Shown in pieces: positions 5,830 to 59,900 of a DNA stretch of 64,000 bases (positions are counted from its first letter, which is position 1; each line of letters begins with the position of its first letter). The stretch spans positions 682,001 to 746,000 of the forward strand of contig NIVC01000126.1 in assembly GCA_002269645.1 (NCBI GenBank), read 5' to 3'. The stretch comes from Macrostomum lignano. Its lineage: Eukaryota. Made by a program: the position numbers and the translations under genes. The notes below the pieces were generated by a model. The model was not told where the DNA came from and ran no database searches. It was given only the letters and a program-made list of their open reading frames with translations.

Positions 5830-6682
5830 AGAAGAGACGGGATCTCAGAGATGAGAAGAGACGGAATCTCAGAGATGAGAAGAGATGGAATCTAAGAGAT
5901 GAGAAGAGACGGAATCTCAGAGATGAGAAGACGGGATCTCAGAGATGAGAAGAGACGGGATCTCAGAGATGAGAAGAGACGGAATCTCAGAGATGAGAAG
6001 AGACGGGATCTCAGAGATGAGAAGAGACGGGATCTCTGAGATGAGAAGAGACGGAATCTCAGAGATGAGAAGAGACGGAATCTCAGAGATGAGAAGAGAT
6101 GGAATCTCAGAGATGAGAAGAGACGGGATCTCAGAGATGAGAAGAGACGGGATCTCAGAGATGAGAAGAGACGGGATCTCAGAGATGAGAAGAGACGGGA
6201 TCTCAGAGATGAGAAGAGACGGGATCTCAGAGATGAGAAGAGACGGGATCTCAGAGATGAGAAGAGACGGAATCTCAGAGATGAGAAGAGACGGGATCTC
6301 AGAGATGAGAAGAGACGGGATCTCAGAGATGAGAAGAGACGGGATCTCAGAGATGAGAAGAGACGGAATCTCAGAGATGAGAAGAGACGGGATCTCAGAG
6401 ATGAGAAGAGACGGGATCTCAGAGATGAGAAGAGACGGGATCTCAGAGATGAGAAGAGACGGAATCTCAGAGATGAGAAGAGACGGGATCTCAGAGATGA
6501 GAAGAGACGGGATCTCAGAGATGAGAAGAGACGGGATCTCAGAGATGAGAAGAGACGGAATCTCAGAGATGAGAAGAGACGGGATCTCAGAGATGAGAAG
6601 AGACGGAATCTCAGAGGTGAGAAGAGACGGAATCTCAGAGGTGAGAAGAGACGGAATCTCAGAGGTGAGAAGAGACGGGATG
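5830..6682. repeat. 24-bp minisatellite (GAGATGAGAAGAGACGGGATCTCA), ~35 copies
   Basis: Near-perfect tandem copies; explains the MRRDGISE-type ORFs. Confidence 0.97.
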
Positions 6683-12297: not shown

Positions 12298-12644
12298 TGT
12301 GTTGTAGCATCTTAATTACTGGATAGAATTTTTAACCAAAGTCAATAAGCGACAATGTGAAGACACAGAGCGAATACGATAGCAATAGCAATGCTGATTT
12401 GCATTGAAAATACTGAAAAGTACAAATTACTATTAACAAATAATAAAAATTCACCACTTGTCCATCGAAAAGGATTGTATACGTAGTATTTACTTGAAGT
12501 ATTATTAGCAAAGTGGTATTTAAAATGCGTATGTATGTACATATCCAACTCAAATATACATGCGATGTACAAGAGCGCAAATATTATTATGCGCGTCAAC
12601 AGCCAGCGTGCAACTTGCAATTCTAATTAATGGTTCAATAAAAG

Positions 12645-38000: not shown

Positions 38001-40351
38001 AGGCCACGCCAATTGTAAAGACAAGCAGCCAGCACTGAATGTCTATGGCTCTGTCTGATTCTGTCTATGCTAGTCTGGCCTCATGAGACGTAACTCGCTT
38101 CCACTCCAGGTTGCTTCTTATAGAGCTCCTTGGCTCTGCTGACCATCCGGCAGCTTAAAGTTAATGATAACAGCACTTAACTGCTGCATATTATAGGCAT
38201 AACCTAGCAGCCAACGTTAAAAAATAAGGTATAATATGTTTCATCCTCCGTTGCAGAAATTTACTCCTGTACTGCACCGGTACAGCTGGCTATAGTACAT
38301 CATAATTTTTGCTTAACCGAATTATGCGCTCTAAAGCTCATTTTCATGACAACAGACATTTTGATGACCCTGCTGCTCTTTACAGGGCGTTGTTTTCAAT
38401 ATAGTATGTGTTAAATTAATTAACACTTAACCTTTTGTCCCTTGTATGCGTCCTTAGTATTCAATAATAATGCTTCTTGTTATATCCCTAAAATTCAGCC
38501 TTCTAAAATTAATTTCATCACTTAAGTCAAAGGGCTTGGAGACTCGTCTCAAAATTACTCGTTTCAAAATAGTGGGTCTCTTTATTTCCTTAATAAGACT
38601 AAATTCAAGATATTCATCTTGCACGTGACTTGGCGTTGGTTGCAACTGCCAAAAATAATCGTAAATTAAATAAATTTCCTAAAAGCAGAACCATTTCTTC
38701 TATCTAGTCGCAGCATATCTGAATCATATGGAATCCAGTCGGGGTAAATTGTCAGACGAAATGATTAATCCTTACATTATACATGCTTCGCATGACAGTG
38801 CTATGCATGCAGAAAGTTTTTGTCTAAATAAAAAGCAGGAGTAATATTTGCTGTTGAATGATGCATGACTTATCCAGACTATTTAATTTGTAGATGTGAA
38901 GATGAGATATGAACGGGGTAAATGTAAAGCATACCATGCAATCATTAGTCTTCGTAAACTTGGATGCATTTCTCTCTCTCTCCCCTTTATTGGTTATTAA
39001 GTTGCTTTCTGACACTAGCTCTATTTACAACGTCTTTCCCTTTTAGACTTAATTATGCGAAGTCGATGGTCCATAACTTCTTAAGTGGGCTTCCATCGAG
39101 CTGCAAAGCCATCATCAGCTACGATGTGGCTTGTAAGCTATCGAGCCACTTTCACCAAGACGAGCGACTTCGGTTTGCTGTGCCTGCATTTCACGCCTAC
39201 GGTCACACAGCTGCCTGCCAATTGAAGTCCGGGATCCGCGCCACCGAAGGTGCCGGGTTAACTGATGGCGAGGCTGTTGAACGATTCTGGTCAGAGTTGC
39301 GCCCGATAACGAAGCAAACTAAAGAGATGACGAAGAGAAATCGCCAGGACTTCCTGAACTTTGTCTGCAGTAGCCGTAACTTAGCTCTTGTATTCAAAAT
39401 TGGTAAGCAAGTCGCAACTTCCCTGCAATCTCTGCATTTCTATGTCGGTAATTTAGTATTTTATTGAAAAAAAATTATTTCGTTCTAGGACTCTGGCTGA
39501 TAGAGCGTCAACGGCTCCAAGCGAAGACTCTGCGCTACCTAGAAGGCGCGTCTGGCGATGCGACCAAAATAGGTATTTTCATTTTTTCTTTTGCTTCCTA
39601 TTTTTCCTTTTGCTGCTCCCCTTTTTAAGAAGCAGCGATTCGTCTCGCCTTTTTTGGTTAGTTTTTTATTGTCAGCTATGTGCATTTAAGTGACTGATGA
39701 AACCCTTGCATTTTCTATGTAGATGACGAAGCCGAGCGTATTCTCGAAATATACGAAGCAAACCAAGCTGCATCCCGGCAACGAACACGCGATAAGGAGG
39801 CGACGATAAAATTTTTGCACGTGCAAGCTTGCGATCGAGAGTTTCTCTCGCGCTATCTGCTAACCTCGAGGGGACAAAAAATGGCAGCTCATCTGAGAAA
39901 TGTAATTAACAAAAGCTTGGCCAGCAGCAAGACACATGTAAAAAACTACAACCAGGACCATCTCGAAGCACCACTCGACTTTGAAAGCGTTAGGTACCCG
40001 AGTTCGTCTGCTTTTAACGAGCTGCCTTCGGATGTATGCCACGCGATCCAGGCCATTAAACACCGTAATCTCCAACAGAGGCTTCAAGAGGAAGAAGATC
40101 TTTGCTCCGAAGAAGTTCGACGAGTGACGAAGTGGATGGAGTGGTGGCTTAATTTCGAGAGGTTCGACAATTTCGAAAGCTGCCTACGATCTGTAGACGA
40201 AGCTCGGCGACATACTTTAAGGCAACTTTTAAAGCAGCATGGATGCTTGTTTCCGTCAGAAGCGCCCGTAATCGATCGGATTCTTGCCGATTTCCCTAGC
40301 ATGAATTCTGATCATGACAAATCGGAGACCGAAAGCACGAATTCGGATTAA
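29011..40351 (+). CDS. CxC cysteine-cluster + KDZ (Kyakuja-Dileera-Zisupton) transposase, intact 9-exon gene, ~742 aa; exons 29011-29155, 32378-32664, 34211-34307, 34546-34769, 35366-35473, 36579-36877, 39047-39402, 39489-39572, 39723-40351
   Basis: All 8 introns are GT-AG with matching phases (1,0,1,0,0,2,1,1); 2229 nt with no internal stop. Motifs: CILC..YRCLQC..VCLPC..H..SPPHLVQRWNG, CSC..LLRNGFWP, CPAC, LLDACF, GICRHG..GEK..YA, YDVAC, VPAFHAYGH..CQ, GAGLTDGEAVERFWS..KEM..R.DFL. Exon 1 is inferred from phase and splice signals only. Confidence 0.88.
29517..30600 (+). repeat. 14-bp-unit array (CTTTGCTTGCCGAG/A), left arm of an inverted pair
   Basis: Direct reading; lies in KDZ intron 1. 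Confidence 0.93.
31005..31810 (-). repeat. 14-bp-unit array (TTCGGCAAGCAAAA with variants), inverted relative to 29517-30600
   Basis: Reverse complement shares the TTTGCTTGCCGAA core. Confidence 0.92.
32683..34155. repeat. 19-bp minisatellite (TATTGTGATAGGATTGAAC), ~77 copies, KDZ intron 2
   Basis: Near-perfect tandem array. Confidence 0.97.
35539..36065. mobile_element. TIR-bounded non-autonomous element (~58-bp inverted repeats), KDZ intron 5
   Basis: 35539-35597 is the near-exact reverse complement of 36008-36065; no TSD identified. Confidence 0.6.
36174..36538 (+). mobile_element. tRNA-derived SINE (family A) with A-rich tail and 11-bp TSD
   Basis: A-box-like TAGCCCAGCGGTAG and B-box-like GGCTCGATTCC; tail AATAAAAAAAAATAATAA; ATGCATACGTT repeated at 36162-36172 and 36539-36549; second copy at 61493-61848. 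Confidence 0.9.
37949..38133. repeat. Imperfect inverted repeat / hairpin (~58-bp arms, ~70-bp loop)
   Basis: 37949-38006 versus reverse complement of 38076-38133; core CCTGGAGTGGAAGCGAGTT is identical. Confidence 0.75.
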
Positions 40352-40683: not shown

Positions 40684-41652
40684 CTTCGGGTGTGTCATAA
40701 GTAATGTCACTGATGTGAAAACAAACGAACTTGCAATCGCAGATGAACAAAACTGTATTACTCAAAAACATAGAGTCCCCCAATATCAATCACCTTCTGG
40801 CAGTGCTCATACAGCTTGTCCACCTCAGCCTGCAGGTGTTTTTCCTCCAACTGCCATAACCAGTGCAACGCGGCCTGTTTTACCTCTTCATGGTTTGCGA
40901 AACTCTTCTTGGAAAAGTCAGCCTTCAGCCATTTGAACAGGAATCTCTTGCAAAAGTTGAAGTCTGGGCTCTAGGTACTGTCAGAGCATATTCACTCGCC
41001 GTGCAGGCAGAAAATTCGAAACAGCCTTCAGGTGTGCAGCCGTGCGGTGTCCATCTGCCACAGAACCTCGTCCAGGTGACATGGATTTGACCGGAGAGTG
41101 CACCAGAGGTCCCCAGTGTGCCGGAAAAAGTCGATAAAGTACTGGCCATTGACCTTGGTGTTCGGTGGAGTTGTGCAGATGGAGACTCGTTTGTTTGGCG
41201 TGAAGGCTACCAGCAGCATGGTCTTCTTGTCCAAGATGGACTTCCTAGTCACCATCGGCCTGGAGTCCCCAGCTCCCAGCCAGCAGCGATTATCTGCCTT
41301 GCTGCCCTTGCCATCCAGGTGGAGCCAGCTTTCATCCTCAGCAACCAGGCAGTTTAGGATGTCATTCAAGCCCCGGCTGCTGAACACCTTGCGAATCTGC
41401 TTGGTGCAGGCGTCTTGTCGAGATTCATGGTGATTTTTGTTCGCTGCATGGACGATTTTTCATCGCGTTGCACTTGTTAAATCTGCTTGGCGTATTCTTG
41501 CGATAGCTTGGGCCATAAACAACCTATGCACGTCTCAAATGCACTGCTATTGCTTCACTAAGTATACTTTGCAGCTACACTACCCACAAGTCCATGTGCC
41601 TACATATTTTAGACAGAGGCCTGCAGTGACATTACTTATGACACACCCGAAG
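40684..41652 (-). mobile_element. Internally deleted mariner, 969 bp, same family as 27889-28686
   Basis: Same TIRs and TA flanks. Minus-strand remnant ILNCLVAEDESW..KKTMLLVAF..VNGQYF..WQMDTARLH..SPDF..RFLF, with stops and frameshifts. Confidence 0.92.
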
Positions 41653-42814
41653 TACTCAATTATAAGTTTTCGTACAGTGCAATTTTAACCAAAATATGTA
41701 AAAACATGTATTCTTTGTTCATACTTTCTTATATGTACGAGTTGTTGTATACGTAAAAGTTGTTTTTTCTGTAACAAAAAATGCTATATTATATTATTGA
41801 AGCTAACCAATCCGCCATAGTCCAGAAAGTGAAACTGGGTAAAAATTACGCCAACTGTCTTTTTTACAGGGCATTTATTTAGAACTAGTAGTGAATATGC
41901 TGCTGCAGACAATACTCATTTTTAGCTTTTGCTTTACAGCATGAGTACTTTCAAGCAAACTGTTACAACTTTGTGAACGTTTGAATGCATTTTTATAACT
42001 GCTTTAGCACCTGGATAGCTTCCATTGTGAATATTTTCATTAGCGACGTGATTTTCTACTGCATTACAATCCAATTTTGTGGTAATGCTTATTGACCCCA
42101 GTTAAATATTCATAGAAGGCCATGTAATTAGGTAAACAAGCAGTCCCTCTCTATATATAACGCGATTATGTTTACAAAGCTAACGTTTAACTGTCCTATC
42201 CACCTTACATTATACTACATTTTAATAACGCAGGAGTCTTTTACATATCTCTTCGTATACGATAAAAAGATACAGATTGCTATTTATTAAAGAGAATTCT
42301 ACTTTGAACACAAAGGAAATGTGTTTTCTGATCAGATCTCTGTTTGAGGTCCTAGGCTGGTCTTTAAGGACTAATACCGCACTGTCTGCGGTTACAGGAA
42401 AAATTTCTACTATATTAAAGAGTTTGTCTCCAAAAACTTACCTAAGCTGCTAATACGGTCTTTGTAAGTCAACTTGCATTCTCCCAGGTAACAATCGTAA
42501 CAATATGTAACATTACGTAACAATAACGATAACTCTGTATCGTAACAATATGTAGCATCCATTAGTCTTCAATATAAATATATAATATAATATCAATATC
42601 AATATAAAATAAACTTATTGTGCTCCGAAGTAGGCATTCAATCAGAGTGCCGCAACTGTGCAGAAAACTAATGCATTTTAATAACTGCAGTGACGCTCTT
42701 TAACATTTTGGATTATTTTTCTTATTATGGTATAGGGAAAAAAGCGGAAAGTGAATTTTCACCAAATTTCATGACCGGGGAAGAAGATAATTCGCTAGTC
42801 TTCACGTGGGAGAT

Positions 42815-43540
42815 TTGCCAACTGTTACACGGGGGCATGGGGAGAGATGAATATTCGCCAACTGTTACACGGGGGCATGGGGAGAGATGAATATTCGCCA
42901 ACTGTTACACGGGGGCATGGGAGAGATGAATATTCGCCAACTGTTACACGGGGGCATGGGGAGAGATGAATATTCGCCAACTGTTACACGGGGCATGGGG
43001 AGAGATGAATATTCGCCAACTGTTACACGGGGGCATGGGAGAGATGAATATTCGCCAACTGTTACACGGGGGCATGGGGAGAGATGAATATTCGCCAACT
43101 GTTACACGGGGGCATGGGGAGAGATGAATATTCGCCAACTGTTACACGGGGGCATGGGGAGAGATGAATATTCGCCAACTGTTACACGGGGGCATGGGGA
43201 GAGATGAATATTCGCCAACTGTTACACGGGGGCATGGGGAGAGATGAATATTCGCCAACTGTTACACGGGGGCATGGGGAGAGATGAATAATCGCCTAAT
43301 GTTACACGGGGGCATGGGGAGAGATGAATATTCGCCAACTGTTACACGGGGGCATGGGGAGAGATGAATAATCGCCTAATGTTACACGGGGGCATGGGGA
43401 GAGATGAATATTCGCCAACTGTTACACGGGGGCATGGGGAGAGATGAATAATCGCCAACTGTTACACGGGGGGCATGGGGAGGGATGAATAATCGCCTAA
43501 TGTTTTTACAAAGGGGGATGGGGCCGAGAGATGAAATTCG
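42815..43540 (+). repeat. 40-bp minisatellite (AACTGTTACACGGGGGCATGGGGAGAGATGAATATTCGCC), ~17 copies
   Basis: Direct reading. Confidence 0.95.
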
Positions 43541-44649
43541 CCAAATGTCATTTTTTATACTCGTACATTGTCGTTTCTTGACCCGGACATCACAATCCGG
43601 ATATCACAAGGCAAACTTTGCAAGCAACTTCAACCTGCTTCTGACTTCCAGGGGGATACTGGAAGTACCCCGGAGAACGTAAAGCAGCTTGATATCCGGA
43701 CCGGATGCTTGCAATATCCGGGGGGGGGGAGATCAGAAATTACTTATACTATCTGGGCGGACAGCATGCAAGACATCCGAAGGTAGAATTTACGTGCATG
43801 TTACACTACAAGTAATTACATATACATGTTTGAGCTTACCGTGTGGAATGTACCTACCTACATACGAATTTATAAAACATATTACTTTTAGGGCTCTTTC
43901 CAATATACATGTACGCATCCAATTAAAAATAAGAAATTAACACTGGGAAGAGGGTGTGACGAATATTAATTAGGACATTAATTTGTCTAGACGGATTGAA
44001 CTATACCGACGTGTGCGTCCTATAAGCTGCTGTACATGGAGGCCTGGTGTTATTGTTAAGTATGGTAGGTCCCTGAGTGTATAGCAATTGTAGCATTAGC
44101 ATAGTATAGCATTGGTGCACACTGCCCACCCCACCAGAAATAAACAAACAAGCGAAGTTAGGCTGCGAATGAGCACGAAGGGGCCAGAGGGAAACCAGCA
44201 AGCTGACCTGTTTATTCGTCAGGCAATATTCTACGAATCTTAATAGCTCGTAGTAAATTTAAAAAAAAGGTAAATAAAAGCAACACGAACGAGAGAAAAA
44301 TTTCAACCAGGGCAGTGAGATAACTGCCCCGAAACACGACATAACCCCCCCCCCCGGCCCCCAACCCCACAAGGAGGAGGGGTGAGTGCCGGCGGGGGAG
44401 ATGCAAACATACTGGTATGCAAGGGGGGTGGGCAGCGTTCACAAACGCTGGTTAGCGCCGTAGCACAAACCAATCACCCCACCAGAAAAAAACAGGGAAA
44501 GGCTGCGAAAGAGCACGAAGGGGCCAAAGGGAAACCGGCAAGCTGACCTGTCTATGTTGACTCTGAACCTAGTTGACTCAGCCAACACCAAAAAAGCCGA
44601 AGTACAGCAAAAGCAGCAAGAGCGTAACAAGCACAACAACGAATATTTA

Positions 44650-45520
44650 TCTTCCGCCATCCCCCTTTGTAACATTGGCGAATATTCATCTCTCCCCATG
44701 CCCCCCGTGTAACAGTTGGCGAATATTCATCTCTCCCCATGCCCCCGTGTAACAGTTGGCGAATATTCATCTCTCCCCATGCCCCCGTGTAACAGTTGGC
44801 GAATATTCATCTCTCCCCATGCCCCCGTGTAACAGTTGGCGAATATTCATCTCTCCCCATGCCCCCGTGTAACATTAGGCGATTATTCATCTCTCCCCAT
44901 GCCCCCGTGTAACAGTTGGCGAATATTCATCTCTCCCCATGCCCCCGTGTAACAGTTGGCGAATATTCATCTCTCCCCATGCCCCCGTGTAACAGTTGGC
45001 GAATATTCATCTCTCCCATGCCCCCGTGTAACAGTTGGCGAATATTCATCTCTCCCCATGCCCCCGTGTAACAGTTGGCGAATATTCATCTCTCCCCATG
45101 CCCCCGTGTAACAGTTGGCGAATATTCATCTCTCCCCATGCCCCCGTGTAACAGTTGGCGAATATTCATCTCTCCCCATGCCCCCGTGTAACAGTTGGCG
45201 AATATTCATCTCTCCCCATGCCCCGTGTAACAGTTGGCGAATATTCATCTCTCCCCATGCCCCCGTGTAACAGTTGGCGAATATTCATCTCTCCCCATGC
45301 CCCCGTGTAACAGTTGGCGAATATTCATCTCTCCCATGCCCCCGTGTAACAGTTGGCGAATATTCATCTCTCCCCATGCCCCCGTGTAACAGTTGGCGAA
45401 TATTCATCTCTCCCATGCCCCCCGTGTAACAGTTGGCGAATATTCATCTCTCCCCATGCCCCCGTGTAACAGTTGGCGAATATTCATCTCTCCCCATGCC
45501 CCCCGTGTAACAGTTGGCAA
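44650..45520 (-). repeat. Same 40-bp minisatellite, inverted, ~21 copies
   Basis: Direct reading. Confidence 0.95.
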
Positions 45521-46682
45521 ATCTCCCACGTGAAGACTAGCGAATTATCTTCTTCCCCGGTCATGAAATTTGGTGAAAATTCACTTTCCGCTTTTTTCCC
45601 TATACCATAATAAGAAAAATAATCCAAAATGTTAAAGAGCGTCACTGCAGTTATTAAAATGCATTAGTTTTCTGCACAGTTGCGGCACTCTGATTGAATG
45701 CCTACTTCGGAGCACAATAAGTTTATTTTATATTGATATTGATATTATATTATATATTTATATTGAAGACTAATGGATGCTACATATTGTTACGATACAG
45801 AGTTATCGTTATTGTTACGTAATGTTACATATTGTTACGATTGTTACCTGGGAGAATGCAAGTTGACTTACAAAGACCGTATTAGCAGCTTAGGTAAGTT
45901 TTTGGAGACAAACTCTTTAATATAGTAGAAATTTTTCCTGTAACCGCAGACAGTGCGGTATTAGTCCTTAAAGACCAGCCTAGGACCTCAAACAGAGATC
46001 TGATCAGAAAACACATTTCCTTTGTGTTCAAAGTAGAATTCTCTTTAATAAATAGCAATCTGTATCTTTTTATCGTATACGAAGAGATATGTAAAAGACT
46101 CCTGCGTTATTAAAATGTAGTATAATGTAAGGTGGATAGGACAGTTAAACGTTAGCTTTGTAAACATAATCGCGTTATATATAGAGAGGGACTGCTTGTT
46201 TACCTAATTACATGGCCTTCTATGAATATTTAACTGGGGTCAATAAGCATTACCACAAAATTGGATTGTAATGCAGTAGAAAATCACGTCGCTAATGAAA
46301 ATATTCACAATGGAAGCTATCCAGGTGCTAAAGCAGTTATAAAAATGCATTCAAACGTTCACAAAGTTGTAACAGTTTGCTTGAAAGTACTCATGCTGTA
46401 AAGCAAAAGCTAAAAATGAGTATTGTCTGCAGCAGCATATTCACTACTAGTTCTAAATAAATGCCCTGTAAAAAAGACAGTTGGCGTAATTTTTACCCAG
46501 TTTCACTTTCTGGACTATGGCGGATTGGTTAGCTTCAATAATATAATATAGCATTTTTTGTTACAGAAAAAACAACTTTTACGTATACAACAACTCGTAC
46601 ATATAAGAAAGTATGAACAAAGAATACATGTTTTTACATATTTTGGTTAAAATTGCACTGTACGAAAACTTATAATTGAGTA

Positions 46683-47259
46683 CTTCGGGTGTGTCATAAG
46701 TAATGTCACTGCAGGCCTCTGTCTAAAATATGTAGGCACATGGACTTGTGGGTAGTGTAGCTGCAAAGTATACTTAGTGAAGCAATAGCAGTGCATTTGA
46801 GACGTGCATAGGTTGTTTATGGCCCAAGCTATCGCAAGAATACGCCAAGCAGATTTAACAAGTGCAACGCGATGAAAAATCGTCCATGCAGCGAACAAAA
46901 ATCACCATGAATCTCGACAAGACGCCTGCACCAAGCAGATTCGCAAGGTGTTCAGCAGCCGCGGGCTTGAATGACATCCTAAACTGCCTGGTTGCTGAGG
47001 ATGAAAGCTGGCTCCACCTGGATGGCAAGGGCAGCAAGGCAGATAATCGCTGCTGGCTGGGAGCTGGGGACTCCAGGCCGATGGTGACTAGGAAGTCCAT
47101 CTTGGACAAGAAGACCATGCTGCTGGTAGCCTTCACGCCAAACAAACGAGTCTCCATCTGCACAACTCCACCGAACACCAAGGTCAATGGCCAGTACTTT
47201 ATCGACTTTTTCCGGCACACTGGGGACCTCTGGTGCACTCTCCGGTCAAATCCATGTCA
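46683..47259 (+). mobile_element. Inverted duplicate of the mariner at 40684-41652, cut by the gap
   Basis: Reverse complement of 41077-41652 with one visible 1-nt indel (CCCGCGG versus CCCCGG). Confidence 0.92.
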
Positions 47260-47803
47260 NNNNNNNNNNNNNNNNNNNNNNNNNNNNNNNNNNNNNNNNN
47301 NNNNNNNNNNNNNNNNNNNNNNNNNNNNNNNNNNNNNNNNNNNNNNNNNNNNNNNNNNNNNNNNNNNNNNNNNNNNNNNNNNNNNNNNNNNNNNNNNNNN
47401 NNNNNNNNNNNNNNNNNNNNNNNNNNNNNNNNNNNNNNNNNNNNNNNNNNNNNNNNNNNNNNNNNNNNNNNNNNNNNNNNNNNNNNNNNNNNNNNNNNNN
47501 NNNNNNNNNNNNNNNNNNNNNNNNNNNNNNNNNNNNNNNNNNNNNNNNNNNNNNNNNNNNNNNNNNNNNNNNNNNNNNNNNNNNNNNNNNNNNNNNNNNN
47601 NNNNNNNNNNNNNNNNNNNNNNNNNNNNNNNNNNNNNNNNNNNNNNNNNNNNNNNNNNNNNNNNNNNNNNNNNNNNNNNNNNNNNNNNNNNNNNNNNNNN
47701 NNNNNNNNNNNNNNNNNNNNNNNNNNNNNNNNNNNNNNNNNNNNNNNNNNNNNNNNNNNNNNNNNNNNNNNNNNNNNNNNNNNNNNNNNNNNNNNNNNNN
47801 NNN
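47260..47803. other. Assembly gap, 544 N
   Basis: N run. Confidence 1.
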
Positions 47804-50800
47804 CCAAAAACGCATTCCGAGTCTTGATAATCACAAGTTTTCTGCAGCAAAGAACGCTAGAGAGCGTGAAACTCTTGCAAAGTCGCTTGGTCGAGGCACG
47901 TGGGACGTAGTTTTGGATTTCGATAGGGATAGCCGCAAGGAAGGAGGCATCTTCACCTTTATGGAAGAAGAAATGCGCAAGTTAGGTCGACTGAGCACGG
48001 TAAAGTCGTGGGAGGACCTTTCCACTCTGCAGACCACGACATTGAAGAGTGCCAAAGCGTGTCATCGAACAATTTACGTTCAAGTGATGGGATGCAGCGA
48101 GACAGGCAAAGCAGGACCGACTAATGAACACAAGCTCAAGAAGCTGCTGAGAACCAACTTGCTAAATGCCATATTTGAGAAGAACAGCGTCCTAGACCAG
48201 TGTTGTGTACGTCTCTATGCCTCTGCACCTCATTTTTGGAAATTGAAAATTTACCAATGAGTCCCACAGACGCTGAGTGCCATCTAAGAGAGGCATTCTT
48301 GTCCGAGTCTAACAATGAAGATGCCTTTAAAGCGTATACCATGTACGTTCAGCAGCAAGTGCTATCCGGCCTAAGCGATCAGCTAAGGAAAGTCTATAAG
48401 AATCAAAGTCTGCAAGAACACTTGATTATCGTTCCTGTGAATCAGTTATGCCATCTATTTGAGTCTATTTATCCTTCAATGGTTGCACTGAAACAATACG
48501 AGCTGCCTGGAAAGCACGGCCAAATATCTTTGGCTCGCGAGCAGTTCGCGACGTTTAAACCGTACCTCCGGCTTTACCACATCCAGTCTGGTCAGTCCAA
48601 GTATCTCAGCAAGGCCCTCGATCAGAAGGAACAGTACACTAATCAAGTTCGCCGTCAGTTCTTAGCTGGAAACGAACTCACAAAGGAGATGCTCCATCTG
48701 CATGATGAGCTACGATACCAAAACAGTGGAATATATGTTGAGCGAAGACAAGTTGAGACGCAGAAAGAAAAAGTGAGCAAATCTCTTAGCCATTGCGGCA
48801 ACCGTTCTTTCACAACCTGGGACACCAACGTCAGGCAGATCATTCGCTTACCTCACGAGGCAGTATCTGGTGCGTCAACGATCGCCAAAATCGTGCTTTG
48901 GCGTCTTCGTAAAGAGTACCCTTGCATTGAAGTGAAGTGCTTCGATCGAATGCAGGAAGTGTCTGAAGGTATTTGTACCCTGCACAAGAAGACAGAGCTA
49001 CCTGTCCTAGTGCTGTTCGACTCTAAGGAATTCCCACACTCATCTGTTCACGCGTTTGCGTCAGAGTTGAACAGGCGCGTTTCTGCGCCAAGATTTGTTG
49101 CCGTTTGCGTGGAGCAAGTTCAGTCCAATAAAGAAACTAACAGGAAACGGTGCTACTTTGAGATTCCAGTTTTGACGGCAAAACTTAGCCCAGACGAGGC
49201 AAATGCATTCACGAAAATATACATGGAATCCGGAGGCGATGAGAATCGCAAGTTGACGGACAAAGTCGAAAAGGAAACTGATCGAACACCGTTCCTTTTC
49301 GGCGTCTGGCACTTTAGAAAGGATTATGGAAAGATTAACGTGTTTATTCAGTCTCTTCTAGAGGATTGTGAAAACAAAAAGAATTCTCTTCTGCGCTTTG
49401 CCTGCCTGACGAAGTATTTCACGCACTCATCTTTGAACTTATCGATAGCTGCCAAATTTCTGGACCTTCCTCCAGAACAGAAGGATCCTTTACAGGTGTT
49501 GGAACACTTGGAAGAACAGCGATATCTATTAACTGTGAAAAGAATGCGGAAAGGATGGGGGTTGGCCCAATATCGATTGTCGGCGAGAAAATTCTTGAAT
49601 ATCTTTTTGAAGATATCAGTCCTATCGAGCGAGAAGGAGAACAAGTCAGAATGTTTGTGAGCAGTCTGTGCAAAATGGGTGAAGAAGGACCCGACTCTCT
49701 GCTTTCCTGCTTGACCTACCTGGTACGAAGGTTGATTTCTTGCCAGAAAAGGACAAAACATCCTAAGTTAACTGACTTCTTCATGACTCTTCACGAGAAC
49801 CTTCCATTGGAAGAAATTGAGCGCATATTCACGAGACTAGCAAATGCTTTTCCAGAAACAAAGTCTCACACGCTGGTCCACTTTGCTCGCTATGTTGCAT
49901 ACCACCAGAAGGATCATACAAAATCTATCGTTTTTGTCCGTAAGGCATTGGACATAACTGAAGATGCGACATTCTTCTCGGACACAACTTGCACTGATGA
50001 TGTAGTCCTTGGTTTATCCGCTCACCTCATTAACTGTCGCGTGAGCTCCGGTCCAGAGATATCTTTTCAAGAGGCTCAGGCGTGGGCTGTCGAAAGCATT
50101 CGCCTGTGCAAGAAGATTCAAAAAAGAGTTCCCGCAAAGTCAACTGGAGATTTCGTTTACAAAGCGCACCCGTTTGTTTACGAAATTCAGGCGCAGCGCA
50201 TACTGCTAAATCGTTTCTTCGAAACTGAGTGTCACTCTGACAGCGAAATTTACTTTCAGGAGATTGAAAACGACTGCTTCTGTGTTGCTAGAGAAGCACA
50301 TCAGAAAATAATTGAGAATGTTTTAAACCTGGAGAAGATGCACGAAGAAGGCGAAGTGGACTCGGAAACGCTAACCGAAAAGGATATGGGAAAACTAAAT
50401 GATGCAAAAGAAGAATTTATCAGCCGCTATCGCTTCTCTCAATCGGCCATCAATGCAAGCAGCGTGAAGCTTCGAACAGACATCAAGGACAATGCCTATG
50501 CGTGGACGATTGTGGATGTGTACACCCAGAGCAAGAAGGCATCTAAGGATTCGGCTCTATGGGATATTTATGAGTCCGATGATAACAAGCTGCTGGCGCG
50601 ACTTATGTGGGATCGCGTCTGGCGACTAAAAGGAGTGAATGCGAAGGACTCTGAGTCACTTTTAGAGATTTTGCTGCAGTGCAAATCGAAGCTGTCGCGT
50701 ACTTACTTGGAAGCCTGTGTGCTAACTATCTTGTCTCGACCTACAAAGGACGTGCTAGAACGGGGCATTCAACTTGCTGCCGATTGGCGAACGAAGTTCA

Positions 50801-51273
50801 CTACTGACGTCATTGCCAATTTCATACACGGCGCGTTCTATCTGGCCTCTGCGCTCTCTCGGAAGCCGACGGATCCAAAGCGAAAAGAACATCTGCAGGA
50901 GGCCAAGCAGCTGATGGAAAGGTGCGATCGCCTGACGAAACGGGACGATCCGTGCCATCAGGGAAGCTCCAAGACATTTCCTGGACGAAACGTGCCCCGA
51001 CTTGTTCTCGGCACTGGTGATAACTTGAAAGCTTTGATTTACCTACCGAGACGACGATCGTTCGAAGAGCAACAAAAGTACATCCTGAACGAGACTCGCT
51101 ACAGAACATTCACTGGCTACCTGAACGACACCGATCGAGTGGTCTGCGAAGAACTTGACTGGGTGCTTCGAGTGCCCGAGAACTCGTTGCGAAAAGAAGA
51201 ATTTCGTCAAAGGCGCAAGGTGTCGTTTGCCATTGCGTTAGCCTACAGTGGACCTGTGCCTTTCATGATCTGA
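47804..51273 (+). CDS. SAMD9-like: SAMD9/SAMD9L-like STAND-type NTPase (SIR2-like, P-loop, helical/TPR-like, OB-fold), intronless, 5' end lost in gap, two 1-nt frameshifts (~48235, ~49560)
   Basis: Compared with recalled human SAMD9: WDVVLDFDRDS ~ WFAVLEFDPES; IIRLPHEAVSGASTIAKIVLWRLRKEYPC ~ [36 protein letters not shown] ~ PVLLLVD; LSPDEANAF ~ LSPKEQRAF; C-terminal KVSFAIALAYSGPVPFMI* ~ KVSFYLGFSIGGPLAYDI. About 1150 aa after repair. Confidence 0.85.
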
Positions 51274-52589
51274 CGTCACTTTTTGGTCGATTGAAGTTTT
51301 GAGGTACATGTGACTGGTAACTACATAGTGCATAGGGATAATTTCCATCTGAAATTTATTCTGCGGCTAAGTTAAGTAAAGCAGGCAACACAAAAACAGA
51401 AAAAAAGATTTAAACTATACATCTGAAGTTGATTTTGTTAAAGTTTAAAACCCACCTTCAAGTTGACAATAAAAATATTTGTTTGGCGGAGTATCAGGAA
51501 TTTCAAAACGATATTGAACGATACTATTCGATATGAATCGAGATTTTGCCAATTTTGGCTACCAATTTCTGGAAGTTTGCCTGCCTAGGCTAAGTTTCTT
51601 TGTTTTATCAATTTTGATTAACTTGTCTGATAGATTATCCAGCTTTGCACTTTTATTCATTTTGCATGTTCACTATCTATAAAAAGCTTTAATTTTTTAG
51701 AAAGAAAAAAAATATGCAGTCAAATTTAAGCAAAATTAAATAACTGTTGCATGCGGGCCCTAGTTTTTTGTGAAAAAATCTAATCTAATAAAACAAAAAG
51801 TCACTTATGAACGTTTCAATGATAGAAGTATTTTCTCTTCCGAAGTAAAAATTGTAAGAAATTATTTATTCTACGAGCTAATAAAATCTAATTTTTTCTT
51901 TGTAATTTTTTTTACTTTATCCGATGCGAAATTTAAGAGAAAGTGTTTTGTTTACTATTTGATTCTTTTTTACGAGCTATGTTTCTGTTGCGCTTCGACG
52001 AATTTCGATCGCATATTGATTCGCATATTGAAAAAAGTCGGTAAAATCTGCTTATTTTCTACAATATCAATCTAAATATAATATATTTGGCGTTTCAATA
52101 AAAGTAGTAAAATTTTTGGAAAGTTACTACTTACTTACTACTTAAGTAAGTTGCATGGAAAGTTAGTTAAGTCCATGCTGACAGAATAATTCCACATTAA
52201 TGAATTAACTTAGGTTAGACATTACTTGGTAGATGACAAAATAACACCCTTCCAGTAATTGGTGTATGTTGATTAATATTGACGAAGTGTGACAAGAACC
52301 GAGGTTGGGGTCATCCTAGAAGACGAAATGACGGATGACGAAATAAGTAGGAATTAAAAAAATTTATGCGTTATACTACTTGATTAGACAGCCGGTTATG
52401 GTTGTCTATTTAGAAAAAAGATAAAATAGTTGAATAATTGTTAATTTTTTACGCATAAGGCCTGTAGAAAAGTAGTAATTAGGTAGGAAATTTTATTATT
52501 CAAGTCGCATTTTCTATTACACCTGCCTTGGCCGGCATATGTGCAAAAGCTGCGACAGCACAGCTGTGGCTATTGCTGTTCAGTCGAAG

Positions 52590-52780
52590 GACTGGGGGGG
52601 TCGCCACACACACTCTCAGTTACCCCAGCTAATGCTGGTGCCAATTTTACAGCTGGATGAACTGAAGCAATGCAGAGAGTAAAGTGTTTTTGCTCAAGGA
52701 CACAAATTGTTCCGAGTGAGTCGAGAATCGAACCACCGGACCTTTCAGTCGTGAGTCTGACGCTCTAACCACTAGGCTAC
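52590..52780 (-). mobile_element. tRNA-derived SINE (family B)
   Basis: Reverse complement begins TAGCCTAGTGGTTAGAGCG..GGTTCGATTC (A/B boxes), then a GTGTCCTTGAGCAA..TTGCTTCAGT..CAGCTGTAAAA body; partial second copy at ~63555-63690. Confidence 0.8.
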
Positions 52781-53977
52781 AACTGTTTCATAGCATATAG
52801 GTTTTTCCTTCACAGCTATGCAGCAAAGTCTGTCGATGTAGAAGTCAAATTATTTAATAAAACCAGACTGATATATTAGTCATTCAGAAGTCCTTGAACC
52901 TCGCGGGAGTTGAGTTGCCAAAAAATCTTGCGACTAAAATTGGATCATGCCTTAGAACATGACTCTACAGAAGCATCGGCATTCCACTGAAATTTAGAAA
53001 TAAATAAACTACAAAGTCGATCAGTCGTGCATTGCATTTCAAATCCTAATAAAATATACATATAGTGCATATATGCAAGGAAAGAAGCCAAACGGTTAAT
53101 CGTCTTTCCAATTCAGTCTTGATAGCTAGATCATTTTTAACAGAATAACAGGTTATGCTATGCAATGGTTCACACTGAAGCTACACGTAGCCAAGCGTGT
53201 GCCAAAGTTCTTTTTATTTTAAGCCACTCTTTTCTTGGCAAAATTTTGCAAGCAGCAAATAAACTCCCGCGCTTAAGTCTCTCTGATTTGATAGCGCCTA
53301 CAGAATGTTAAATGAGAGTAGAACAGTTTTGAAAACAAGAAAAGTTCACTTTATCGCAATCGTAAAGGTAAAAATACGCCGAGCAAAATGCCATGCACCC
53401 ACCACACTCGGGCAGGTTTAAGGTCGCGGAATAAAAGAACATTAAATCAAATCGAATGCAGGCAGCTCTATACACGAATATATTTGCTGTTTAGGCCAAT
53501 AAATTTCGCAGGATAAAGAGTTGATCCTGGCCGAAGCCTACTCTCTGCGCACCTGTTCTTGGAGAGTCATATAAGCAAGCCGCCCTGGGGTCGTTTCTTT
53601 TTTCAAAAAGTGAGATACAGTATCTTATCAGCGCAGTTTAACCTTGCAGTCGAGGCTGAATGCGTGCAGTTGCCCATGAGTTTTTGGGCGAGACCCGAAA
53701 AGTCAAACAAGTGGTGTTGAGAAAACGCCCTTTGCCACAATTCCACAATCCGCGAATTTCGGTCTGATTCATGGAAAATTATTCGACCGAAAAATTGGCT
53801 CGGGGGGTGGGAGGGCCGAGCTTTTAATCGGGCAGGTATAAAAGTGGTTGCGGTGTGCCAATTTTAGCATGGCAGAGCTGCGATAAACTTTGCAGAGCAG
53901 TAGTAGCCGTTAAATACTAATCGCAAAAAACTCCAGAGCAACAGTAGACTTGGCTGTTAAACCACTTTGATTCAGTT

Positions 53978-56900
53978 ATGACTGAGGTGGAATACGCTGG
54001 AAACAGGGTGAGCATCAAAGTTTAACAAATTCTTTATGTTCAAAAAAGTAAACTTGTTCCATAAATTTTGCTACATTCTTTCGTCCGAACAGCAACATGA
54101 CACGGACGATATTGAAGAGCCGAAGCCGCCACAGGCGTTTAGCTCGTCAGCTGCTATCGTTTTCTCCTGTCTCGGCACCGTCGTTGGCACCGGAAATATT
54201 TGGCGATTTCCTAGAATCGCCGCCCAGAACAGCGCCTCTCAGGGTGAGTCAATCTAGGAAATCCGTCATATTTGCTACTGAAGTTTCTACCGATCGGAAT
54301 CGTGTCTCCCGTGGTCTGGGGCTGCTGATTTACTAACCCATCTGCTGACATTTCCGCAACTTAAACTACTCACAGTAGCGTAATAGAAAATTTTGCGTTA
54401 TCCCTTAAACTATGCCCTAATCGACAACTAAAGTTTTCACTTTTAGTTACCCAAACTTTTTTTTGCTAAACGTTAAACGCTGTTCCCGTCAAGCTGTAGT
54501 TTTAGTTCCACAAATGCGCAGTTTTATATTTATTTATATGTTGACTTTTGTAAGACCTTTAGTGGCTACATGTAGGTATCAAATGGCTAGCAAAATAAGA
54601 TTAATCACACTGCAGGTCTAGGGGATGCCATAATATTTACTAAATACCGCTATTAAGAGCTGCGTAACGACGCATTCGAACCTCAACCCGCAGGCACCCT
54701 GATTTTTCTGGTCACGTGGTTTGTTTTTCTGTTCCTGTGGTCGTCGCCGATGCTTCTAATCGAGTACGCCATCGGGCGCTACTTCAAAAAGTCGCCGATC
54801 CAATCGTTTAGGAAGGCGATGGGCGACAAGTTTGTGTGGTGCGGCGCCTGGGTCACTTCGGTGACGTTTCTGATTAGGTAAGATCGACAGGTTTCTTACA
54901 CCAATTGATCAAGCCAGTCTGCAGTCGCAGCAGATTCAGGTTGACTTTCATAGTAGCAATAAATGAGGAAATTCTGCTATATTCGAACCAACGCCAGCTT
55001 AATTATGATCAATTTTCTCATCGCATCAACATCGTTGGAAAAGTTACTGAAGCTCGAAACCTCTTGGACTTACAAAATAGTCATATGCAAGCGATGTGCG
55101 GTTCGCTCGAGTCTGGTTCCCTAAATTTAACGATAGGCATACAAAATGACATTCCAATAATTTTATACAGTTAAAATTCTTTCTACTATCAGTAGTTTAT
55201 TCGCAGCTAGAGAGACAAAACACTTAAGGACAGAGGGTCAGAAATATATTAAAAAGTAAACTTAGCGTACTTTTTCTTCAAACTCTACTTACTCTGTAGT
55301 GTCATTAGCAAAGCCTGTGTGTCTCTGTGAAAAACGCTGAAATTTTAATTTACAAGTTCAAGAAAACTTGAGTGATATACACTAGTTCAGGGCTCGGCAA
55401 ACTTCGGCCCACGCAGGCCACATGCGGCCCGCAAAGCCTCTTTATCCGGCCCTCGGGTCCTTTAAAACTTCACAATAGCAATCTATCTCGTTTACGTCTT
55501 GTGTCTCTTCTCAGCTATCTGTCTCTACTCTCCTCTCTCTTCTCTCTCCCTTTCTCTCTCCTCTTAGCTCTCTCCCCATCTCCCCTCTCCCCCATTCCCC
55601 CTTCTCTCTCCTCTCTCCCCTCTCCCTTCTCCCATATTCCCCCTTCTCTCTCCTCTCTCCCCTCTCCCCTCTCCCCTTTCCCTTCTCCCCTCTCCCATCT
55701 TCTCTCTTACCTCTTCTCTCTCCCCTTTCCCCTCTCTCCTCTCTTATCTTCTCTCCCATTATCTTCTTTCTTATCTTTTCTTTCATCCCATCTCTCCTCT
55801 CCTCTGTCATCTTCTATTGTCTCACCTTTCTTCTCTCATCTGGCCCGAACCCGAAGCCCCGATTCTTTATCTGGCCCTTAAGGTAAAAATCAGCTGGCCC
55901 TTTTCACCGACCTCTGTAGTAGATTTAACAACTAATCATATTTATCATTGCCCAGCCAAGTCAAACTGTCATAAGCCGTACGTTTCACTTAGGCTCGTCG
56001 TCTCTCATTAATAGCCAACAAGGTGAAAGCCGAGGCAAACCCGACCGCTAGTAGGCAGCTAACGCATATCAATGCATAGTTCATCGGCCCCATCGATAGA
56101 TTAGCCTCGATGGCCGGCTCTGAAATATCATACAAGGATAAGGGTTAATAGTTAAAAGATTTTACGTTATTTTACCTACTTACAGTAGAGCAGTTTGCAT
56201 CTTACTAAACTTTTTTTAACTCACTGTAGGCCAAGCATCTGTATCGCATCAGGAATCCTCTATTAGTATTTTTCCCACTATGATTGGGAACGTCGCTTAG
56301 AAATGCAACTAGTAGGTGCTGCTTCGAACTGACGCTTCGATTTCTACGCGTTGTCGAGCAGAAACTGGGACTGCCGCAGTAACGGGCCGGGGAGTAGTCC
56401 CACTGGCGCTTGCCTGCGAGTATCGCTTATGCAATTGATCCGATGCGGTCTCTTTTGAATTGTGAGAGTTCAAGGTTAGCCTATTGAGGAGATGGTCGTG
56501 GCTCAGTTTACGCAACTGGCATGGAAGGATGGGGTGGCGGTCCAAGTTTAACCTACTGGAGGAGGGGGTGGCGGCCCAAGTTTAACCAACTGGGGGAAGG
56601 GGCTGGCGGCCCAAGTTTAACCAACTGGGGGAGGGGGTGGCGGCCCAAGTTTAACCACATGGGGGAAGGGGCTGGCGGCCCAAGTTTAACCACCTGGGGG
56701 AAGGGGCTGGCGACCCAAGTTTAACCAACTGGGGAGGGGCTGGCGACCCAAGTTTAACCACATGGGGGAAGGGGCTGGCGGCCCAAGTTTAACCACCTGG
56801 GAGAAGGGGGTCGCTGCCCAAGTTTAACCAACTGGGGGAGGGGGTCGCGGCCCAAGTTTAACCAACTGGGGGAGGGGTGGCGGCCCAAGTTTAACCAACT

Positions 56901-59900
56901 GGGGAAGGGCTGGCGGCCCAAGTTTAACCAACTGGGGAGGGGGTGGCGGCGCAAGTTTAACCAACTGAGGGAGGGGGTGGCGGCGCAAGTTTAACCAACT
57001 GGGGGAGGGGTGGCGGCCCAAGTTTAACCACATGGGGGAAGGGGCTGGCGGCGCAAGTTTAACCAACTGGGGGAGGGGGTGGCGGCGCAAGTTTAACCAA
57101 CTGGGGGAGGGGTTGGCGGCCCAAGTTTAACCACATGGGGGAAGGGGCTGGCGGCCCAAGTTTAACCACCTGGGAGAAGGGGGTCGCGGCCCAAGTTTAA
57201 CCAACTGGGGAGGGGGTCGCGGCCCAAGTTAACCAACTGGGGGAGGGGGTGGCGGCCCAAGTTTAACCAACTGGGGAAAGGGCTGGCGGCCCAAGTTTAA
57301 CCAACTGGGGGAGGGGTGGCGGCGCAAGTTTAACCAACTGGGGGAGGGGGTGGCGGCGCAAGTTTAACCAACTGGGGGAGGGGGTGGCGGCCCAAGTTTA
57401 ACCACATGGGGGAGGGGTGGCGGCGCAAGTTTAACCACCTGGGGGAAGGGGCTGGCGGCCCAAGTTTAACCAACTGGGGGAGGGGCTGGCGGCCCAAGTT
57501 TAACCACATGGGGGAAGGGGCTGGCGGCCCAAGTTTAACCACCTGGGAGAAGGGGGTCGCGGCCCAAGTTTAACCAACTGGGGGAGGGGGTCGCGGCCCA
57601 AGTTGAACCAACTGGGGGAAGGGGGTGGCGGCCAGTTTGACCAACCTGGAAGAAGGGATTGGCGGCCCAGTTTAATCTTCGCAAACTCAGAACTGTCTTT
57701 AGACTTACCGTCCCGAACCTCAACAAAGTCCCTAGTGCACGAGGGACTCTCCTGCATTTCGTAGTCCAGCATCTCGAGTTCCACCCGATACTCCAAGCCC
57801 TCCTGCTGGTCCGTATCCTGGCAGTTGCATGAGGAAATCACCCAGCGGCAGGTGGCGCTGCTAAAAGTTTAATTAAACAATCAAATCAGCCACACATCAC
57901 ACTTTCAATGGAAATTTAAAGACTTGATCAAACTCACTCTGGGTAGCTGTCGGGATACCTGGGACTGCTGATGTACTGGTAGGACAGTTTAGCGTACACC
58001 TGGTAGTACTCTGCACAGCTGCCAGAGGTTGCCACCCAGTCGCACGGGTCCGTGGCCGGAGACCGATTCTCACCTGAGAATAGATTAATTAAATTCATAG
58101 AAAAGTGGCGCTCCTGTAATCTAATTTTCGCCTTGGCACCTAAAAGGCACACATGCAGACACCAAAAGTAGCACCAGGCATCAAAAATAGAGTTCAGATA
58201 TCCGAAATAGTGCACTATTCTAGACAACTTAGATGCGTCAAGACGCCCAAAAAGGCGTCAAGGCTCTCAAAGTGACGCCAAGATACCCACAGTGACGTCA
58301 AGACACCAAAAAAGGCGTCAAGGCTCTCAAAGTGACGCCAAGATACCCACAGTGACGTCAAGACACCAAAAAAGGCGTCAAGGCTCTCAAAGTGACGTCA
58401 AGCACCAAAAGTGACGTCTAGACACCCAAAGTGACGTCAAGACACCCAAAGTGACGTCAAAACACCCAAAGTAATGTCAAGACACCCAAAGTGACGTCAA
58501 GACACCCAAAGTGGCGTCAAGACAACCAAATTGGGTTAAAACACTCAAAATGACGCCAAGACCCACAGAAATCGTGAATTCATAACTGAAAAGTCATCCT
58601 GACATCAATCTTCGAAAAAGAGGCTTTTCCAGAAATTCCGAGAGCCCAGCTTAAAAAAATGAAGCAACACGAAACTTACACGTTCCGGCCTTTAAAACAG
58701 GCATACATTGGCACAGAATTGCGCAGGTAACAATCGCCATCGCAATGCGGTGGTCTTTTCTATAGATTAAAACCATAATGCCGATTTGCTAAACGAGGCT
58801 TGTGCTCAGGTGTTTCCTGGTTTTTGAGGATTTTTGTGTGCTCGCCTGTTTATACAGTCTCTGGGAGAGAAGTTCGGTCGATAAGGCACGAAGCGCTTAT
58901 ATAGATAAGATGACTGCTTGCGACAAAGTGAACTCTTTTTCTTCAGCCAACTATCGAACGCTATTTTGTTTTCGATACTACTTATTAAATCAGTAGCTTG
59001 TAAAGGCAAAAGTTACCTAAACCATAAACTTTCAGTTGCTACTATTCGGTCGTGCTGGGCTGGTGTTTCTACTATGTGTACAAAACGATTCAACTGTCCG
59101 CGACCGGAGAGCTGCCGCAGGCCGAGCCAGAGAGTCAGGAAATATTCGAAGCGTTTGCTGTAAGGCTTTGGCCCGAGTTCTCTTTTAAATTCACAGGTTG
59201 ACTGCTTTTGACTCTGAAGAAACTGGAATCTGAGGCTTCCAGTCCTGAAGAAACAGGAAAATGCATTGGATCGAGGACACTCTACCCTGAAAAATTAGGG
59301 ATTCCCTGCCCTGAACAACTAGGGATTCCCTGCCCGGAACAACTAGGGATTCCCTGCCCGGAACAATTAGGGATTCCCTGCCCGGAACAACTAGGGATTC
59401 CCTGCCCGGAACAACTAGGGATTCCCTGCTCTGAACTTTATTCCCTGCCCTGAACAACATTCTCCTGACTATAGAGATGACTAGAGATTAACATAGGCTC
59501 CCAGTCCTGAAGAAATTTAAGGATTGAGTCTCCCAGTTTCGCAGTCCTAAATGAGCAGTTGCTTCGCCTTTGAGACGCTAAATTCAAAAGACGCGTTGGT
59601 AACGTTAACCGCCTGATTGACTTCTCAATTCCCAGGAGAAAAGCTACTGGCCAATCATGTGCCACGGTCTGGCCATCCTCGCATCCGGCGCTTGCGTAAT
59701 CGGCGGCATCACCTGGATTGAGAAGGCCAACATGGTGCTGGTGCCTACCCTGCTGCTTATCATTATTGGCACCTACTGCTGGTCGGTTCTGAACAAATAT
59801 AGCGACTATGGCATTAAGTTCCTATTTACTCCGGATTTAGGTAAGTTCAGTTGTGCGCTCCTACTAGGGTGTCGTGAGGGATTTAACCCAGCGACTAAGC

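Follow-up and report, generated by a model that had tools for sequence, protein, structure and literature searches.

A SAMD9-like gene of the flatworm Macrostomum lignano: probable duplicate of an annotated family member, encoded in one large exon and imperfectly assembled

Introduction

The SAMD9 family acts against viruses and cell proliferation and is of medical importance, and in vertebrates the body of the SAMD9 and SAMD9L proteins is encoded by one large exon. Here we describe a locus related to this family in a stretch of 64,000 nucleotides (hereafter the window) from the flatworm Macrostomum lignano (contig NIVC01000126.1, positions 682,001 to 746,000, forward strand). With high probability, positions 47804-51273 of the window represent the 3′ 3.47 kb of a single large coding exon of a SAMD9-family gene, a duplicate of the annotated gene Mlig002174g2, in which the small insertions and deletions (indels) that break the reading frame are most likely assembly errors.

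Human SAMD9 and SAMD9L are antiviral STAND proteins that are induced by interferon and use an AlbA_2 tRNase as their effector; structures are known from cryo-electron microscopy (cryo-EM) (9zjr and related entries; PMC13600222; see also bioRxiv 10.64898/2026.02.01.703102). The family is present in most animals and in bacteria, and has a core of AlbA_2, SIR2-like, P-loop (GGT/S), TPR and OB domains, to which invertebrates add N-terminal modules that vary (Mekhedov, Makarova and Koonin, 2017, PMC5445408). Flatworms are unmentioned in the main text of that paper, and among the papers searched we found none on SAMD9 in Macrostomum or naming the locus tag. In bacteria, Avs9, Avs5 and Avs6 are described as SAMD9-like STAND defence proteins (PMC12680541).

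The flatworm gene resembles human SAMD9 and SAMD9L in the order of its parts, which are a SIR2-like domain, a NOD with a lysine-less Walker A and an upstream His, a TPR/helical region and a C-terminal beta domain; its sister copy in M. lignano, the 1577-aa protein P0001 encoded by BOX15_Mlig002174g2, additionally has an AlbA_2-like N-terminal domain (at a borderline score), and, as in the vertebrate genes, the body of the sister-copy protein lies in one large exon. It differs from human SAMD9 in that identity is only 13-18% in structural alignments and in that the window copy is without the AlbA_2 part. The same conserved core is found in the SAMD9-like proteins of other invertebrates (Brachionus calyciflorus, Styela clava, Sinanodonta woodiana, Elysia chlorotica), whereas several members of the nearest invertebrate clade carry HEPN_DZIP3 in place of AlbA_2. 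With the bacterial Avs proteins the gene shares a modular logic of N-terminal effector, STAND core and C-terminal sensor (PMC12680541), and proteins from Smithella and Glassbacteria metagenome-assembled genomes (MAGs) can be aligned with the family model over the stretch between the NOD and the C-terminus; in contrast, the window protein has no PADLOC match, clusters with animal sequences and lies in a eukaryotic chromosomal context. What we report is a duplicate, unannotated and imperfectly assembled, of a member that itself has an annotation; it belongs to a family that was already known in invertebrates and whose architecture comprises an AlbA_2 nuclease, a SIR2-like domain, a STAND-type NOD, a TPR/helical region and an OB-like C-terminus.

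Results

The coding sequence fills window positions 47804-51273 (+), beginning at the first base past an assembly gap of 544 N (47260-47803) by which the gene loses its 5′ part, and ending with a stop codon at 51271-51273. In the list of open reading frames (ORFs) of the window it is split into three long pieces, each in a different frame (47804-48260, 48200-49660 and 49555-51273), and searches were made either with the separate pieces or with the pieces joined by XX. The joined query returned P0001 as the closest protein, with 98% identity over 99% of its length. The gene for P0001 is located on contig NIVC01000104.1 (locus L001), where two short 5′ exons precede a main exon of 4170 bp (L001 10955-15124, aa 188-1577 of P0001), and the coding sequence in the window is colinear with this exon and has no intron. 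A first-pass annotation, made from the letters of the window alone, had described about 3.5 kb of continuous, intronless coding sequence among intron-rich neighbours. The continuity is confirmed, the conceptual translation being 98% identical to P0001, which excludes chance, and the intronless layout is confirmed as well; the single-ORF or single-large-exon organization is seen again in P0001, in two further M. lignano proteins (P0002 and P0003) and in two relatives from other organisms (P0008 and P0011). As to the neighbours, the statement stands for the only one checked, the sodium:neurotransmitter symporter (SNF) gene of the sister locus, which has introns because more than 6 kb encode at most 576 aa.

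Assignment to the SAMD9 family is carried by profile comparisons. Searched by itself against the PDB, the NTPase-containing ORF gave a marginal match to a human SAMD9 chain (E=3e-4; aligned window segment IIRLPHEAVSGASTIAKIVLWRLRKEYPC), and the C-terminal ORF, likewise as a single sequence, gave noise only. With a profile of four Macrostomum proteins, human SAMD9 was the only PDB sequence at E<1 (E=3.5e-11, 470 residues across the P-loop region). Among 1.84 billion representative proteins, all compared with a profile, 609 relatives were recovered at E<=1e-3, 165 of them at E<=1e-10, and a homologue search with a 21-sequence alignment, limited by its word index, added only three distant proteins. 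A 56-sequence family alignment, headed by sister-copy aa 400-1000, was drawn from the relatives found by profile search; its profile matched near-full-length human SAMD9 chains in the PDB at E=1.8e-103, from the SIR2-like region to the last residues, in an alignment that starts at residue 124 of the SAMD9 chain and includes the DFDPES motif region. Generic TPR proteins were far behind SAMD9, and a faint C-terminal match to a cold-shock protein (CspB) was seen at E of about 0.8. Of the SAMD9 chains, the Macrostomum-only profile reported just 37ib_A, with 967 residues, and missed the longer ones with the same region, all of which were found by the broader profile; this is probably an effect of search filters or bias correction rather than biology.

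At the N-terminus the evidence is borderline, with P0001 scoring 23.5 bits against the AlbA_2 model of Pfam, below the cut-off of 25.3, and P0002 scoring 25.4 bits; an alignment of the AlbA_2 region found no matches among PDB sequences. Pfam detected no SAM domain in P0001, P0002 or P0003, which is expected because SAM has been reported for vertebrate members only (PMC5445408).

Predicted structures lead to the same family. For the SIR2-like region and the NOD, an AlphaFold model was built from sister-copy aa 400-1000 (98% identical to the window), since in the window itself the frame is interrupted there; this model (pLDDT 89, pTM 0.87) consists of an alpha/beta domain followed by the NOD. 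Its six best Foldseek matches are human SAMD9 cryo-EM chains (best 9zjr, E=1.2e-24, TMq 0.60, 613 columns), and the next folds, p97/TRIP13, follow at E=1e-6, 18 orders of magnitude behind SAMD9. A second model, of window positions 49555-51270 (pLDDT 81, pTM 0.76), is all-helical to residue ~460 and ends in a beta-rich C-terminal domain with strands at model residues 483-570. Here too the six best matches are human SAMD9 (E=2.2e-9 to 7e-8, TMq 0.33-0.42), while TPR proteins such as Ctr9 and APC reach no better than 1e-4, about 3.2-4.7 orders behind. The SAMD9-like identification of the first-pass annotation is therefore upheld by the profile matches in the PDB, by Foldseek on both halves, the comparison which it had itself proposed, and by the intronless layout. 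From the domain order given there, the SIR2-like, P-loop and helical segments are retained; the C-terminal segment, presented as an OB fold, is predicted as a beta-rich domain and may be called OB-like only.

To place the flatworm proteins within the family, a neighbour-joining tree was calculated from 391 NOD columns of 140 sequences, including a human SAMD9 fragment taken from the profile alignment, with 100 bootstrap replicates. The three Macrostomum proteins are monophyletic (99/100), and their sister is P0008 (79-83/100), a single-ORF gene on a eukaryote-like metagenome contig, where it lies beside a eukaryotic-type acetyl-CoA carboxylase. Together with 13 others, including two proteins of the rotifer Brachionus, they form an invertebrate clade (98/100). 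Its neighbour in the point-estimate tree is a clade of human SAMD9, fish and the mollusc Elysia, a join without bootstrap value, and the ‘SAMD9-like’ proteins of coral, tunicate and bivalve join afterwards. The named bacterial members (the Smithella and Glassbacteria MAGs) fall outside. The deep branching order is weak, because distances exceed 2 substitutions per site. Of the animal and bacterial groupings raised by the earlier annotation, the animal affinity is nevertheless the one supported. Its suggested link to prokaryotic Avs proteins was not recovered directly, as no match to the bacterial Avs models in PADLOC was obtained, the 2023 release of PADLOC predating the naming of Avs9.

Among the nearest relatives outside Macrostomum, four proteins (P0010-P0013) have an N-terminal HEPN_DZIP3 domain, three of them at E=1e-28 to 1e-32, followed by the SAMD9-like core. 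In P0011 the two parts lie in one uninterrupted ORF of 1435 aa (L005 5001-9308) on a 912-kb eukaryote-like contig, and the fusion is therefore not a gene-model artefact in that case. Among the papers searched, none combining SAMD9 with HEPN/DZIP3 was found.

The ATP pocket of the family has been defined in the cryo-EM study of human SAMD9, in which H737 stands in for the Walker A lysine, R837 is the sensor-1 residue (R837A abolishes antiviral activity), and R982 and H985 form the R-x-x-H motif of the WHD (H985A is gain-of-function) (PMC13600222). In the window, the Walker A region reads HEAVSGAST (48854-48880, +); the His equivalent to H737, which is His in 51 of the 56 family members, is kept and there is no Walker A Lys. 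Human 742-GGT-744 is replaced by GAS (G-A-S-T versus human G-G-T-T), as are two further consensus residues, the first Gly and the Pro, and the deviant P-loop xSGA[ST]T is carried by all three Macrostomum paralogues. In Walker B (VLVLFDS, 49004-49024, +) human D799 is kept and D800 is Ser, a common state in the family. The sensor-1 position (49115-49117, +; P0001 aa 858) is Gln in the window, in P0001 and in P0002, the latter two being the only proteins with Gln there in the 56-sequence family, where 49 members have Arg; P0003 has Arg as well. The R-x-x-H motif of the WHD is A-P-I-S in the window (49567-49578, +; P0001 aa 1007-1010), and the motif is absent from all three Macrostomum paralogues as well as from P0008 and P0009.

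As the flatworm clade departs from human SAMD9 at several ATP-contacting positions, its nucleotide sensing is probably altered or reduced. The replaced contacts are functional and not family-defining, and hence weaken the notion that the protein works exactly like human SAMD9 without touching its membership. In the term ‘STAND NTPase’ used in the first-pass annotation, ‘NTPase’ may be too strong with the sensor-1 Arg and the WHD His replaced. To judge from their sequences, the flatworm proteins clearly belong to the family but have a nucleotide switch that is modified; that they are functional is argued by the strong purifying selection described below.

A more complicated picture emerges when the window is compared with its sister locus. 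Window positions 47804-52126 align with L001 11652-16010 at 98.1% DNA identity, and the downstream flanks are colinear and 92-96% identical up to the SNF gene. Substitution density between the two is 0.75% in the coding sequence (CDS) and 2.9% in adjacent non-coding DNA. Self-comparison of the M. lignano reference has revealed paralogous blocks from a recent whole-genome duplication (also PMC5704211) that diverge by 2.2% overall and by 1.1% in CDS, with large indels being common between them (PMC10733133). The divergence of the window from L001 fits these figures, and the window gene is most likely a duplicate of BOX15_Mlig002174g2 that arose through whole-genome duplication in the neopolyploid M. 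lignano. P0001 has an unbroken frame and its whole 5′ end, unlike the window copy as assembled. An exact-sequence look-up of the 572-aa window ORF matched no other contig.

Two more distant paralogues, P0002 (Mlig021180g1) and P0003 (Mlig000249g2), have 33-37% identity and the same domain order, and a fragment, P0004, came up in the same search. There are at least three paralogue lineages of SAMD9-like genes in M. lignano, each possibly present in several duplicated copies. The UniRef names of P0001 and P0002 begin with ‘Sterile alpha motif domain...’, whereas P0003 is an ‘Uncharacterized protein’. The P0003 model (940 aa) is incomplete: the SAMD9-like locus on NIVC01000107.1 (L003 4674-8823) is longer, and the model covers no more than its downstream ORF. 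The AlbA_2/SIR2-like part lies upstream in another frame (4674-5558), the frame changing near 5555 in the reference assembly itself.

When the coding part was aligned base by base with the sister copy, the two differed by 26 substitutions, by five indels of 1 bp and by an in-frame deletion of 3 bp (CTG at 51159, +) that leaves one Cys fewer. Relative to L001, four of the 1-bp indels are deletions in the window, one in an A run (47835), two in C runs (48034 and 49566) and one that turns CC into C (48185); the sole insertion is a T at 48060. The coding sequence, all on the + strand, is consequently read in six segments. Segment A (47806-47834, phase 1 mod 3) corresponds to P0001 aa 422-430 (KNAFRVLII) at the start of the SIR2-like region and ends at the A-run deletion; segment B (47835-48033, phase 0; aa 432-497) continues this region. 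The short segment C (48034-48060, phase 2, HDIEECQS) lies between the deletion at 48034 and the insertion at 48060, which compensate each other, and is followed by segment D (48061-48184, phase 0; aa 507-548), again SIR2-like. Segment E (48185-49565, phase 2; aa 549-1008) holds the remaining SIR2-like domain, a helical insert, the nucleotide-binding domain, HD1 and most of the WHD, and segment F (49566-51273, phase 1; aa 1009-1577 and the stop codon) holds the end of the WHD with A-P-I-S for R-x-x-H, HD2, the TPR/helical region and the OB-like C-terminal beta domain. Only two frameshifts, and thus three segments, had been recognized before: the shift at 47835 was missed, and the pair at 48034/48060 was overlooked because its two shifts cancel out.

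At each indel the frame of the sister copy is common to the paralogue P0002 (37% identity), which reads DLEECQRG at segment C, and the window is therefore the deviant sequence. Among the substitutions in the coding part 21 are synonymous and 5 nonsynonymous (pN/pS = 0.07). In the adjacent non-coding DNA, 1-bp indels and substitutions between window and L001 stand at about 12:85; five neutral indels in a dead gene would be accompanied by ~35 neutral substitutions, ~27 of them nonsynonymous, compared with the 5 seen. Given the low pN/pS, and with four of the five indels each removing one base at a short base run, we read all five as errors in the consensus of the window's assembly, which is probable if a little less so than the overall assignment. 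That the gene was missed by annotation through the gap and a broken frame, as had been proposed, remains valid with the number of frameshifts corrected; the locus escapes annotation through assembly quality (gap and consensus indels), not through unusual biology.

The DNA on the left of the gap is repetitive. An inverted duplication of 2.5 kb (98.7% identical) has its left arm at 41077-43548 and its right arm, outside the gene, at 44792-47259, ending exactly at the N gap. It could be a true palindromic repeat or an artefact of long-read assembly, and it is likely the cause of the gap or of a truncation of the gene. Each arm carries a 40-bp satellite array (42813-43504 and 44640-45522), and the same ORF is present in both (41028-41387, -; 46862-47259, +); this ORF looks transposase-like but has no Pfam match, and it was left unnamed. 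The region upstream of the gene is rich in transposons, with a fragment of a KDZ (Kyakuja-Dileera-Zisupton) transposase at 38964-39467 (+; Pfam PF18758, E=1.3e-26).

Long minisatellite arrays with units of 19-40 bp and up to 84 copies are numerous in window positions 1-60000 (e.g., 5830-6681, 9780-12298, 29519-31813, 32674-34155 and 56527-57675). The last of these, with 34-bp units, lies inside the downstream syntenic region and has an equivalent in L001. The SNF gene region is syntenic between window 52316-60535 and L001 17452-25127; the two copies are set apart by several indels of more than one base, among them a difference of 97 bp within a 24-bp repeat near 59281.

Discussion

Several observations weigh against the interpretation of this locus as a SAMD9-family gene that is damaged by its assembly only. 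On the side of the protein, the three raw ORF pieces of the window gave nothing significant against Pfam, and neither they nor P0001 matched PADLOC or NCBIfam at E<=0.1; the TM-scores of the predicted C-terminal half are modest (0.33-0.42), so that the overall shape of SAMD9 is reproduced only loosely; and the functionally important sensor-1 Arg and WHD Arg/His are replaced. On the side of the gene's integrity, nothing in the window corresponds to the first ~420 codons of P0001, among them those of the AlbA_2 region (aa 216-355), the DNA to the left of the gap has no match to the sister locus, which is compatible with a true truncation, and the five indels could be real mutations. One might ask, then, whether the gene is a generic TPR-containing STAND/AAA protein, or an Avs-type bacterial gene brought in by contamination or recent horizontal transfer. 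Beyond the missing Pfam matches of the window pieces, this would agree with the many bacterial proteins that match the Macrostomum profile in the NOD region (E=1e-13 to 1e-21) and with the saturation of pairwise distances at more than 2 substitutions per site. Nevertheless, human SAMD9 is the only PDB match of the Macrostomum-only profile and by far the best structural match of both halves, the surrounding DNA is eukaryotic and syntenic with an intron-containing neighbour, the proteins cluster with those of rotifers and other eukaryotic contigs (98/100) rather than with bacterial ones, and PADLOC and NCBIfam return no match, which together make such an origin extremely improbable. Both versions, the bacterial contaminant or transferred gene and the generic TPR/AAA protein, were rejected on the SAMD9 fold and profile match, the eukaryotic context and the tree.

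With membership in the SAMD9 family retained, it has to be considered what kind of copy the window holds, and here the 5′ part may either be unassembled behind a gap of nominal size or be truly absent. In the latter case the copy would be a young pseudogene, having lost its 5′ third after the genome duplication, by rearrangement or through the transposon-associated inverted duplication, and having then acquired real frameshifts. The coding sequence does meet the gap directly, with the transposon-rich inverted duplication on its left and no homology to the sister locus there, and the portion of the large exon that is missing (L001 10955-11651, 697 bp) by itself exceeds the 544 N; the five frame-breaking indels would also be accounted for, large indels are frequent between paralogous blocks of M. 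lignano (PMC10733133), and the locus of the third paralogue (P0003, L003) likewise shows a frame change in the reference assembly. Against this stand the pN/pS of 0.07 with far fewer nonsynonymous changes than a dead gene should show, the typical appearance of four of the five indels as long-read consensus errors, being deletions at short base runs, and the fact that scaffold gap sizes are often nominal, and we consider a dead copy unlikely. Somewhat less likely again is that the window and L001 represent the same locus from two strains, haplotypes or sibling species instead of two copies in one genome. Synteny is maintained for more than 12 kb downstream, and P0001 is the sole near-identical protein in the protein collection; but a frameshifted copy would yield no protein model, explaining its absence from protein databases, and a divergence of 0.75% in CDS and about 3% in the non-coding flank matches that published for paralogous blocks in the inbred reference line (PMC10733133). 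We therefore continue to regard the window gene as a whole-genome-duplication copy of BOX15_Mlig002174g2 whose reading frame is most likely broken by assembly errors.

Homology alone suggests that the flatworm gene may have an antiviral role. If it follows the model inferred from human SAMD9, the full-length protein would be held closed and autoinhibited through contacts between the SIR2-like, NOD and TPR-OB parts; a signal of infection or stress would lead to opening and oligomerisation, upon which the N-terminal AlbA_2 nuclease would cut RNA (tRNA in humans) and shut down translation. It is conceivable, although doubtful at this stage, that the flatworm and rotifer branch constitutes a distinct lineage of animal STAND sensors, in which a rewired nucleotide switch, the sensor-1 Arg and WHD Arg/His being lost from a protein under strong purifying selection, is combined with an interchangeable N-terminal effector, an AlbA_2 nuclease in Macrostomum and a HEPN_DZIP3 RNase in close relatives. 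Such a lineage, if real, would be an animal mirror of the effector swapping seen in bacterial Avs systems.

The presence of a SAMD9-like gene in a spiralian will not surprise the specialist, and it is the rewired ATP pocket together with the alternation of AlbA_2 and HEPN that is worth following up. In the flatworm proteins, the replacement of a sensor-1 Arg whose mutation in the human protein causes loss of function, and of a WHD His whose mutation causes gain of function, amounts to a natural comparative experiment on the ATP switch and on autoinhibition. To our knowledge the invertebrate members of the family are uncharacterised, and M. lignano is a transgenic flatworm model amenable to RNA interference. 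An annotated set of its SAMD9-like genes would permit in-vivo tests of an ancient immune module outside the vertebrates.

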